Positions 18,020 to 18,541 of a DNA stretch of 64,000 nucleotides are shown here, piece by piece (the stretch's first letter is position 1; every line of letters begins with the position of its first letter). Position numbers and translations under genes: made by a program. The notes below the pieces were generated by a model, which worked only from the letters and a program-made list of their open reading frames with translations, had not been told where the DNA came from and did no database searches. The stretch lies in the IMG/VR virus record IMGVR_UViG_3300021440_000013, positions 62,001 to 126,000 of that record; one strand, given 5' to 3'.

Positions 18020-18096
18020 GTAAGAGAGGAGGGCTTAATGCCCTCCTCTCTTTTCTTTTTTGTCATAGTAAAAAAGTTACACCGATCTATATGCCT

Positions 18097-18291
18097 TGGT
18101 AGCGCAGTAAAGGCTACCTAGACGAACTCAGCCGTTTAATTGTCCAGTTAACTCTGTAGACAGCACTGAGGGTTTTTCGAAAAGAAAAACCCTACACGCG
18201 GCTCACACCCGCGTGTAGGACTCACTATTCGATAACAGCATGGAAAGTAGTGCTTTCTCTCCACTCTATACTGAGTGTGATAGATTTTTTT
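18097..18291 (+). ncRNA. Putative TnpB guide (omega-like) RNA cassette, copy 1
   Basis: tggtagcgcag... scaffold, gggttttt/aaaaaccc stem, cctacacgcgg/ccgcgtgtagg hairpin, variable segment, terminator; repeated at offset 232 and homologous upstream of the other two tnpB genes. Confidence 0.65.
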
Positions 18292-18328
18292 ACCACGTAG
18301 TAAAAAGTTCTACGGCTGACAAATGTTC

Positions 18329-18523
18329 TGGTAGCGCAGTAAAGGCTACCTAGACGAACTCAGCCGTTTAATTGTCTGGTTAAGTCCATGATAGCACTGA
18401 GGGTTTTTCGAAAAGAAAAACCCTACACGCGGCAGAGACCCGCGTGTAGGAACTTCCAATCGAGAGCTAACGCAACACGTTGTACTTTCTCTCCACCTTA
18501 TACTGGGTGTGATAGATTTTTTT
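18329..18523 (+). ncRNA. Putative TnpB guide (omega-like) RNA cassette, copy 2
   Basis: Near-identical scaffold to copy 1; different ~30-nt segment after the final hairpin. Confidence 0.65.
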
Positions 18524-18541
18524 ACTCAAGGGGGACTTATT

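Follow-up and report, generated by a model that had tools for sequence, protein, structure and literature searches.

The window analyzed here, a 64-kb stretch of DNA (bases 62001-126000 of a 216,876-bp IMG/VR record with direct terminal repeats, recovered from a freshwater metagenome), belongs to a phage that encodes split multisubunit RNA-polymerase beta subunits and a phiKZ gp29-type tail sheath and that, among cultured phages, is nearest to phiKZ-like jumbo phages, with 35-41% identity. Two tandem units, here called cassettes 1 and 2, lie in the window between a small ORF and the gene tnpB1, and single cassettes precede two further tnpB genes (Table 1). One clearly related phage was found, in which tnpB1 and tnpB3 occupy the same relative positions and their products share 74 and 79% amino acid identity, respectively, with those of the present phage. 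A DUF4326 and SLOG (YAcAr) protein is encoded between tnpB1 and tnpB3 (21579-22778), and a 1749-aa FG-GAP-repeat protein at 144-5393.

Table 1. Features of the tnpB-associated RNA loci and sites of a promoter-like motif. Coordinates are those of the window unless stated otherwise.
Feature	Coordinates	Strand	Remarks
ORF upstream of the array	17609-18019		136 aa, without family match
Terminator hairpin of that ORF, left limit of the array	18022-18052	+	13-bp perfect inverted repeat, then T-run
Cassette 1	18066-18297	+	A-run motif at 18068, P1-P4 at 18098-18219, unit-specific segment, P5 hairpin, T7 + AC at 18285-18293
Unit-specific segment of cassette 1	18221-18252	+	32 nt; candidate guide would be the first ~16-20 nt; starts exactly where the copies and the related phage cease to be identical
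Cassette 2	18298-18529	+	Architecture as cassette 1
Unit-specific segment of cassette 2	18452-18484	+	33 nt; candidate guide would be the first ~16-20 nt
tnpB1	18542-19690	+	382 aa, GTG start, GGGGGA ribosome-binding site
Hairpin over the tnpB1 stop codon	19686-19714	+	Next gene from 19777
Cassette 4	22850-23046	+	Directly 5' of tnpB3; diverged homologue; covariance model 34.6 bits, E 3e-8, full length; same five helices
tnpB3	23047-24198	+	383 aa, 37-39% identity to TnpB1
Cassette 3	31938-32146	+	Single copy 5' of tnpB2; covariance model 176.9 bits; 28 nt between P4 and P5
tnpB2	32157-33305	+	382 aa, 56% identity to TnpB1
Cassette 5	outside the window		Directly 5' of tnpB4
tnpB5 array	213692-214300 of the genome (= L008 2668-3300)		Each variable part followed by a T-run + AC
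Promoter-like motif sites	8134, 24256, 25057, 33368, 39045, 39756, 41448, 59236		Other sites genome-wide

Two tandem units with divergent segments upstream of tnpB1

Tandem Repeats Finder reported a single array in the 64-kb window, at 18097-18525, with a period of 232, 1.8 copies and 85% matches, and a repeat search resolved three collinear blocks of 58, 62 and 47 nt with identities of 95, 94 and 89% at a spacing of 231-232, which bears out the direct repeat at offset 232 described in the original prediction, made from the letters of the sequence. A 21-nt piece of helix P1 occurs exactly twice, while none was expected from 100 shuffles. The near-identical flanks, divergent middle and re-convergence described in that prediction were also recovered: cassettes 1 and 2 are identical through ...CCGCGTGTAGGA, then split into a divergent core of 32 nt in copy 1 and 33 nt in copy 2, and re-converge at CTTTCTCTCCAC, the likeness continuing through the T7 run. 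Identity ends after ...GTGTAGGA in both cassettes and also in the copy of the related phage, and the P1-P4 scaffold of cassette 2 is 92% identical to that of cassette 1. The units are therefore head-to-tail repeats of more than 60 bp that each hold a whole scaffold and a variable segment of their own, as is characteristic of omega-RNA arrays. The shorter variable stretch foreseen for the third copy was found as well, the last scaffold hairpin being separated from the terminal hairpin by 28 nt in cassette 3 versus 44-45 nt in the tandem pair; the same gap is only 4 nt in cassette 5. The copies hold no conserved ORF and differ from each other by indels.

Short motifs mark both ends of the units. 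The prediction had placed one motif before each copy and also at 31938, and GTAAAAAGTT indeed stands at 18300, before copy 2, and at 31938, before cassette 3, but copy 1 carries GTAAAAAAGTT at 18068, with one A more. The sequence of this left-end motif, GTAAAAA(A)GTT, reappears as its reverse complement at the right end of the cassettes, which consists of a T-run and AC (18285-18293, 18517-18525 and 32131-32141) and reads exactly AAACTTTTTTAC both in cassette 5 and in the RNA locus of a distant phiKZ-like relative, L091. The left-end motif and the T-run that precedes it could pair as an A-U hairpin at every unit junction. GTAAAAAGTT is neither a general motif nor a general promoter of the phage.

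The cassettes as structured RNAs

Five helices, P1-P5, are found at matching positions in all cassettes, with a TTAA(C/G)T hexaloop kept on P2. Across cassettes 1-3, 97% of the 105 pair cells that make up 35 base pairs are paired, and 6 pairs show compensatory double changes, which are spread over four helices; none of 500 shuffles reached this score, and slid partners gave at most 1 compensatory pair. The G-U pairs are compatible with the + strand only, and the folds of the three single sequences are more stable than those of shuffles (z -4.3 to -4.75, in standard deviations). P5 remains paired by virtue of compensatory changes and precedes a T7 run, which gives every unit a terminator-like 3' module. 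Two further elements were considered and discarded: a stem that would close the unit by pairing the 5' leader with the 3' tail, which is predicted for cassette 1 alone and is not kept in cassette 2, and a tRNA-like origin of P1, since ARAGORN gives only a tRNA-Leu at 52685. That gene, a tRNA-Leu(TAA), extends from 52685 to 52770.

The scaffold is under strong purifying selection. Between the phage and the related phage, a 41-nt core is identical at 41/41 positions, whereas the tnpB1 genes agree at only 44% of third codon positions, close to saturation, and the RNA sequence is thus more constrained than the codons of the protein. Cassette 4 and its counterpart in the related phage are 86% identical. 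In Rfam searches, the only matches at gathering score in the window were two group I introns, the matches around the cassettes being at chance level only, and no match was obtained in the tnpB4, tnpB5 and L091 loci. Patterns derived from the scaffold recovered only the phage's own contig from IMG/VR and JGI metagenomes.

Linkage to TnpB genes and sister RNA loci

Every cassette stands directly upstream of a tnpB gene, cassettes 1 and 2 of tnpB1, cassette 3 of tnpB2, cassette 4 of tnpB3 and cassette 5 of tnpB4, and the cassettes are linked to TnpB genes exclusively. Across the 217-kb genome there are exactly five copies of the GC-rich P4-type hairpin, one per cassette and all beside the genes for TnpB1-4. 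With a covariance model derived from cassettes 1-3, cassette 4 and its orthologues were retrieved over the full length with E about 1e-8; within the 112 kb searched, the model otherwise gave only weaker matches, which lie on the minus strand and fall inside the same cassettes at palindromic hairpins. The structured scaffold is therefore conserved and co-occurs and co-diverges with tnpB in all five cassettes, as expected of an omega-RNA.

The fifth tnpB gene of the phage, tnpB5 (positions 1474-2667 of locus L008), lies outside the window and is followed downstream by three tandem cassettes of ~215 nt with an unrelated scaffold. These copies do not differ before a sharp boundary between the scaffold and the variable part; beyond it, copies 1 and 3 share their first 17-18 nt despite diverged loops and then drift apart, whereas copy 2 differs. 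A ~16-nt TnpB guide maintained by selection, in an array that combines two specificities, would be expected to leave such a pattern. In other samples, contigs with an orthologous tnpB5 run into the same scaffold and stop inside it. The contigs of the related phage with tnpB1 (L020-L024) and those with tnpB5 (L103 and L104) all begin or end inside the RNA scaffold; repeats cause such breaks in de Bruijn assemblies, and the relatives therefore probably have more than one cassette.

The distant relative L091 encodes a TnpB that is 37% identical to TnpB4, and the RNA of this locus is located downstream of its tnpB, is strongly structured (z -7.2) and has the same 15-nt end motif as cassette 5. The position of this RNA 3' of tnpB, together with the shared end motif, indicates that the RNA is a movable module and not simply a 5' leader. 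In three sister families an exact direct repeat of 11-13 nt is present within the unit (22949-23001 in cassette 4, 5238-5400 in L091 and 2744-2808 in L008), its second copy lying 10-14 nt past the last GC-rich hairpin. The two copies co-vary between homologues, with a T/C difference between cassette 4 and the related phage and GCGCAAAGCAC versus GTGTACAACAC in the tnpB5 cassettes, and the repeat may be an alternative-pairing or pseudoknot strand. Judged by this repeat, the scaffolds of the three families extend ~22 nt past the last hairpin, which by position would place a guide further 3'. The repeat is absent from cassettes 1, 2, 3 and 5.

TnpB proteins and gene surroundings

TnpB1 matches the Pfam families Cas12f1-like_TNB (PF07282, 2.5e-14) and OrfB_IS605 (PF01385, 1.2e-6), and the structures of ISDra2 TnpB, 8h1j and 8bf8, with E about 4e-21 (3.6e-21 for 8h1j). 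Its GIDVN, VERL and DRDVNAA motifs align with the catalytic residues D191, E278 and D361 of the ISDra2 enzyme, the RuvC D-E-D triad, and the triad of TnpB1 itself, D185, E269 and D352, is invariant in 6 clade members; with this triad intact, TnpB1 appears to be nuclease-competent. The genome encodes five TnpB paralogues, all of them solo and 25-56% identical to each other. Neither a TnpA/Y1 transposase nor a serine recombinase was found in the phage genome, and Cas1 was likewise absent from it. Given the lack of a transposase, the low identity of the paralogues and the synteny of the loci, the TnpBs do not have the character of proteins residing in IS elements, and the absence of TnpA and serine recombinase combined with the synteny in the related phage suggests that the tnpB genes are fixed, not hopping. 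A 439-aa ORF at 8531-9850 has a PHROG match annotated as transposase and no Pfam match, and is conserved in G001, a TnpB-free syntenic relative of 210 kb.

After each of tnpB1-4, the only feature is a 12-13-bp hairpin that covers the stop codon; the following gene begins ~85 nt further on, which leaves no room for a canonical 3' omega-RNA at these genes. The cassettes are not found at, or overlapping, the 3' end of tnpB; they end 10-35 nt before the start codons.

Transcription

In a metatranscriptome of the same habitat, contigs span 18173-19672, with breaks at the hairpins that end genes, and the contig of the upstream 136-aa ORF ends at 18016. The depth was ~150 for this ORF versus about 12-20 for its neighbors, the contigs over 18173-19672 having about 16-20. 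Cassette 2 is joined to tnpB1, and cassette 4 to tnpB3, in continuous assembled RNA contigs, which suggests read-through from cassette 2 into tnpB1, and termination at cassette 2 is therefore at best partial. A sigma-70 promoter scan upstream of the cassettes gave nothing. A promoter-like motif of the phage itself, ...TATATAT(C/T)(C/T)TACTTGAC, is present in ~13 intergenic regions, mostly 45-65 nt before gene starts, and resembles the early promoters of phiKZ; it is absent from the cassettes.

Variable segments and searches for their targets

By position, the variable segments of cassettes 1 and 2 are placed as the guide of an omega-RNA would be, directly 3' of the scaffold and behind a sharp boundary. 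The two segments have a TCGA core in common and are identical at 10/18 positions (~50%), and the segment of cassette 1 agrees at 12/18 positions with that of the TnpB-proximal cassette of the related phage. The common core and the ~50% identity give the segments the look of homologues that have diverged rather than of spacers acquired independently. About as much divergence is seen in other unconstrained parts of the cassettes, including the 5' leader, with 64% identity, and the loop of P4, and, taken with the shared core, the divergence of the segments could mean relaxed constraint on a linker. A semi-conserved motif is located 3' of the variable part in cassettes 1-3.

Searches with the variable segments returned no target in the phage's own genome and none in the loci and contigs of the related phage. 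In the TnpB-free relative G001, matches did not exceed those of shuffled guides; a test for homing into empty sites gave no match there either, although at ~45% amino acid identity this genome is too diverged to inform. In IMG/VR, 16-17-mers matched only unrelated contigs without extension or common flank; INPHARED yielded nothing; and two 19-mer singletons in unrelated MAGs among the GTDB genomes are at chance level. No TAM was recovered from the phage, its relatives, IMG/VR, INPHARED or GTDB, and the true host and competitors are probably outside these collections. Three individual matches were examined and set aside: a 16-mer of cassette 1 in seven related prophage contigs, which shows neither extension nor homology to the phage, and two 15/16 matches at the level of shuffled controls, one between the 3' segment of the related phage and the tail-sheath gene of the present phage (190796-190811 of the genome), the other between the 3' segment of cassette 2 and a conserved gene of G001 (7442-7457).

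A possible two-guide array and its alternatives

We regard it as very probable that the cassettes encode functional, structured RNAs that act as partners of TnpB. For the tandem pair, we lean slightly toward a two-unit omega-RNA array whose divergent segments set the specificity of TnpB1. The two 232-nt units would then be tandem paralogous genes for a structured RNA of roughly 190-200 nt, the cognate omega-RNA-type guide RNA of the adjacent TnpB1, and each would consist of the P1-P4 scaffold, the unit-specific segment and the hairpin/T7 module as a terminator of its own. Either RNA would be bound by TnpB1 through its scaffold, the unit-specific segment would, with its first ~16-20 nt, guide the cutting of complementary DNA beside a TAM, and the RNA 3' of the guide would be trimmed. 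We infer the guide role of the two segments from their position, from the sharp boundary and by analogy with the tnpB5 array. With two cassettes, one nuclease would be given two specificities, the pair being a small omega-RNA array, and because the phage genome holds no match to the segments, the targets would be non-self, such as competing phages, other mobile elements or host DNA. The original prediction of a guide array multiplexing one TnpB is upheld in part: the neighboring TnpB is intact, the RNA genes are self-contained and tied to TnpB, the boundary 3' of the scaffold is sharp and the tnpB5 locus offers a parallel, but no target or TAM was found and the segments look homologous. Nothing points to CRISPR-like acquisition; Cas1 is absent and the segments resemble diverged homologues.

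Among the alternatives, the one that survives best, although we consider it unlikely, accepts the cassette RNA as the partner of TnpB and regards the divergent stretch as a tolerant linker, the specificity being placed further 3', in the CTTTCTCTCCAC region, where the copies are nearly identical, or there being no programmable guide at all, in which case the duplication would serve dosage or redundancy. It draws on the co-varying internal repeat of cassette 4, L091 and tnpB5, which puts the scaffold end beyond the last hairpin, and on the failure of the variable segments to find targets; the homologue-like character of the segments, the comparable divergence of the leader and the P4 loop, and the absence of ~17 nt of the stretch from cassette 3 all agree with it. 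The internal repeat, however, is missing from the very cassettes at issue as well as from cassettes 3 and 5, and the boundary after P4 is as sharp as that between scaffold and guide in the tnpB5 array. Moreover, the region 3' of the stretch is a compensatory hairpin followed by T7, terminator-like and odd as a guide, and its matches to phage genes are at chance level.

A second alternative, which we hold to be quite improbable, takes the cassettes for 5' leaders that act in cis on the tnpB mRNA as structured attenuators, perhaps bound by TnpB for autoregulation, with the tandem pair as a double switch. The arrangement of the loci would suit such a role, in that each cassette brings a hairpin and a T-run just ahead of the ribosome-binding site, within 10-35 nt of the tnpB start, RNA contigs run on from cassettes 2 and 4 into tnpB1 and tnpB3, and the cassettes have no TATAT..TACTTGAC promoter of their own. 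The RNA of L091 and the cassettes of tnpB5, however, sit 3' of their tnpB, where a leader cannot act, and the better conservation of the 125-nt scaffold than of the protein's codons points to a trans-acting ribonucleoprotein component. Roles as leader and guide can, in any case, coexist.

That the cassettes are decaying IS200/IS605-type ends, or a neutral tandem duplication devoid of function, is close to refuted by the conservation data: TnpB genes usually reside in IS elements with hairpin-bearing ends, and the cassette end ...TTTAC presumably resembles the IS608-type TTAC target or TAM motif, but the genome has no TnpA, no tnpB has a matching hairpin at its other end, four helices carry compensatory changes, the 41-nt core is unchanged across phages with near-saturated synonymous sites, and the region is transcribed.

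If the two-guide reading is extended to the whole phage, a wider picture can be drawn, which we offer tentatively and as a doubtful rather than a probable one. In a phiKZ-like, probably nucleus-forming jumbo-phage lineage, several active TnpBs may have been domesticated, free-standing, self-terminated guide-RNA genes may have moved upstream of them and multiplied, and the resulting small arrays, of two units at tnpB1 and three at tnpB5, may be an RNA-guided weapon directed at co-infecting phages or host DNA.

Comparison with known systems

The cassettes share with the omega-RNA (reRNA) of the ISDra2 type a multi-stem scaffold that ends in a hairpin, a variable part at the 3' side that would correspond to the guide, a D-E-D RuvC partner of ~380-400 aa and a location beside tnpB on the same strand (PMC10097598, PMC8612924). 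The ISDra2-type RNA, however, overlaps the 3' end of tnpB, whereas the RNA gene of the phage is upstream and has its own hairpin and T-run; the variable part of the former is flanking DNA outside the transposon end, while that of the phage is internal to the unit. The phage loci also differ in having no TnpA, no IS ends and no sequence or Rfam similarity to the ISDra2-type RNA, and the pseudoknot of the latter was not identified in the cassettes.

Canonically, omega-RNAs are located downstream of tnpB, and type V arrays downstream of cas12, and an upstream RNA is the arrangement of IscB and Cas9d (PMC10691335). The IscB/IsrB omega-RNA and Cas9d systems thus resemble the phage loci in that the guide RNA gene is 5' of the nuclease gene (PMC10691335), but the RNA of IscB, a protein of another family, carries the guide at its 5' end, whereas the variable part in the phage is 3' of the scaffold, as in TnpB and Cas12. 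Omega-RNA arrays as such are already known, with repeats of more than 60 bp, sharp boundaries and a proposed capacity for several targets, from the Sigma-TnpB, Cas12f1 and V-U40-43 clades (PMC10691335). They are like the phage array in the tandem arrangement of whole omega-RNAs and in the sharp junction of scaffold and guide, but they are bacterial, are located downstream, and mostly accompany inactivated or Cas12f-derived proteins (PMC10691335). The array of the phage, in contrast, accompanies an apparently active TnpB in a phiKZ-like phage, is located upstream and has a terminator-like 3' module in each unit, and the genome holds a second array of three units with an unrelated scaffold. The locus is set apart by an apparently active TnpB, a jumbo-phage host, upstream self-terminated RNA genes and two independent small arrays in one genome; in our literature search, neither TnpB of phiKZ-like or nucleus-forming phages nor omega-RNA genes upstream of the nuclease were the subject of any paper.

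The gRNAs of TldR in temperate phages provide another point of comparison, since there, too, a domesticated, non-mobile TnpB relative is used with a fixed guide against non-self (host) DNA (PMC10705468, PMC13418256), the guide role in the present case being the conditional one set out above. TldR has no catalytic triad and a single guide in a gRNA encoded downstream, and targets the fliC or oppA promoter (PMC10705468, PMC13418256), whereas TnpB1 has an intact triad, an RNA upstream and two candidate guides. Type V CRISPR systems such as Cas12f and Cas-lambda follow the same repeat-variable-repeat logic for one RuvC effector, but their repeats are 25-40 nt long, while the unit of the phage is 232 nt, made up of scaffold and terminator, and occurs only twice, with no Cas1. 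The short repeats, unrelated spacers and adaptation module that define type V CRISPR-Cas are thus not seen at the locus, and, as the variable parts look like diverged homologues, nothing indicates acquisition.

If the segments are guides, the locus would represent a compact natural system that multiplexes one ~380-aa nuclease by means of cassettes made up of scaffold, guide and terminator, and the omega-RNA would have been uncoupled from the 3' end of tnpB to act as a separate gene upstream of it. Type V arrays have been proposed to originate by serial duplication of omega-RNA segments (PMC10691335), and the pair of cassettes would then be a concrete intermediate for the formation of CRISPR arrays by such duplication (PMC10691335). 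The five diverged TnpB/RNA pairs of this one genome constitute a set of possibly orthogonal miniature editors, and the system, being compact and experimentally tractable, bears on the origin of guide arrays. Even if the segments are not guides, the cassettes are a well-supported new family of structured RNA tied to a TnpB clade.

RNA-guided nucleases would, if the guide reading is true, also be added to the tools of jumbo phages. Jumbo phages are known to compete with one another by means of homing endonucleases carried in introns. The two group I introns of the window, at 47166-47496 and 47634-47970, are full-length (Rfam RF00028, 64.6 and 55.4 bits, respectively) and stand back to back after an ORF for a split RNA-polymerase beta subunit (45948-47162), and both are too short for a homing endonuclease gene.
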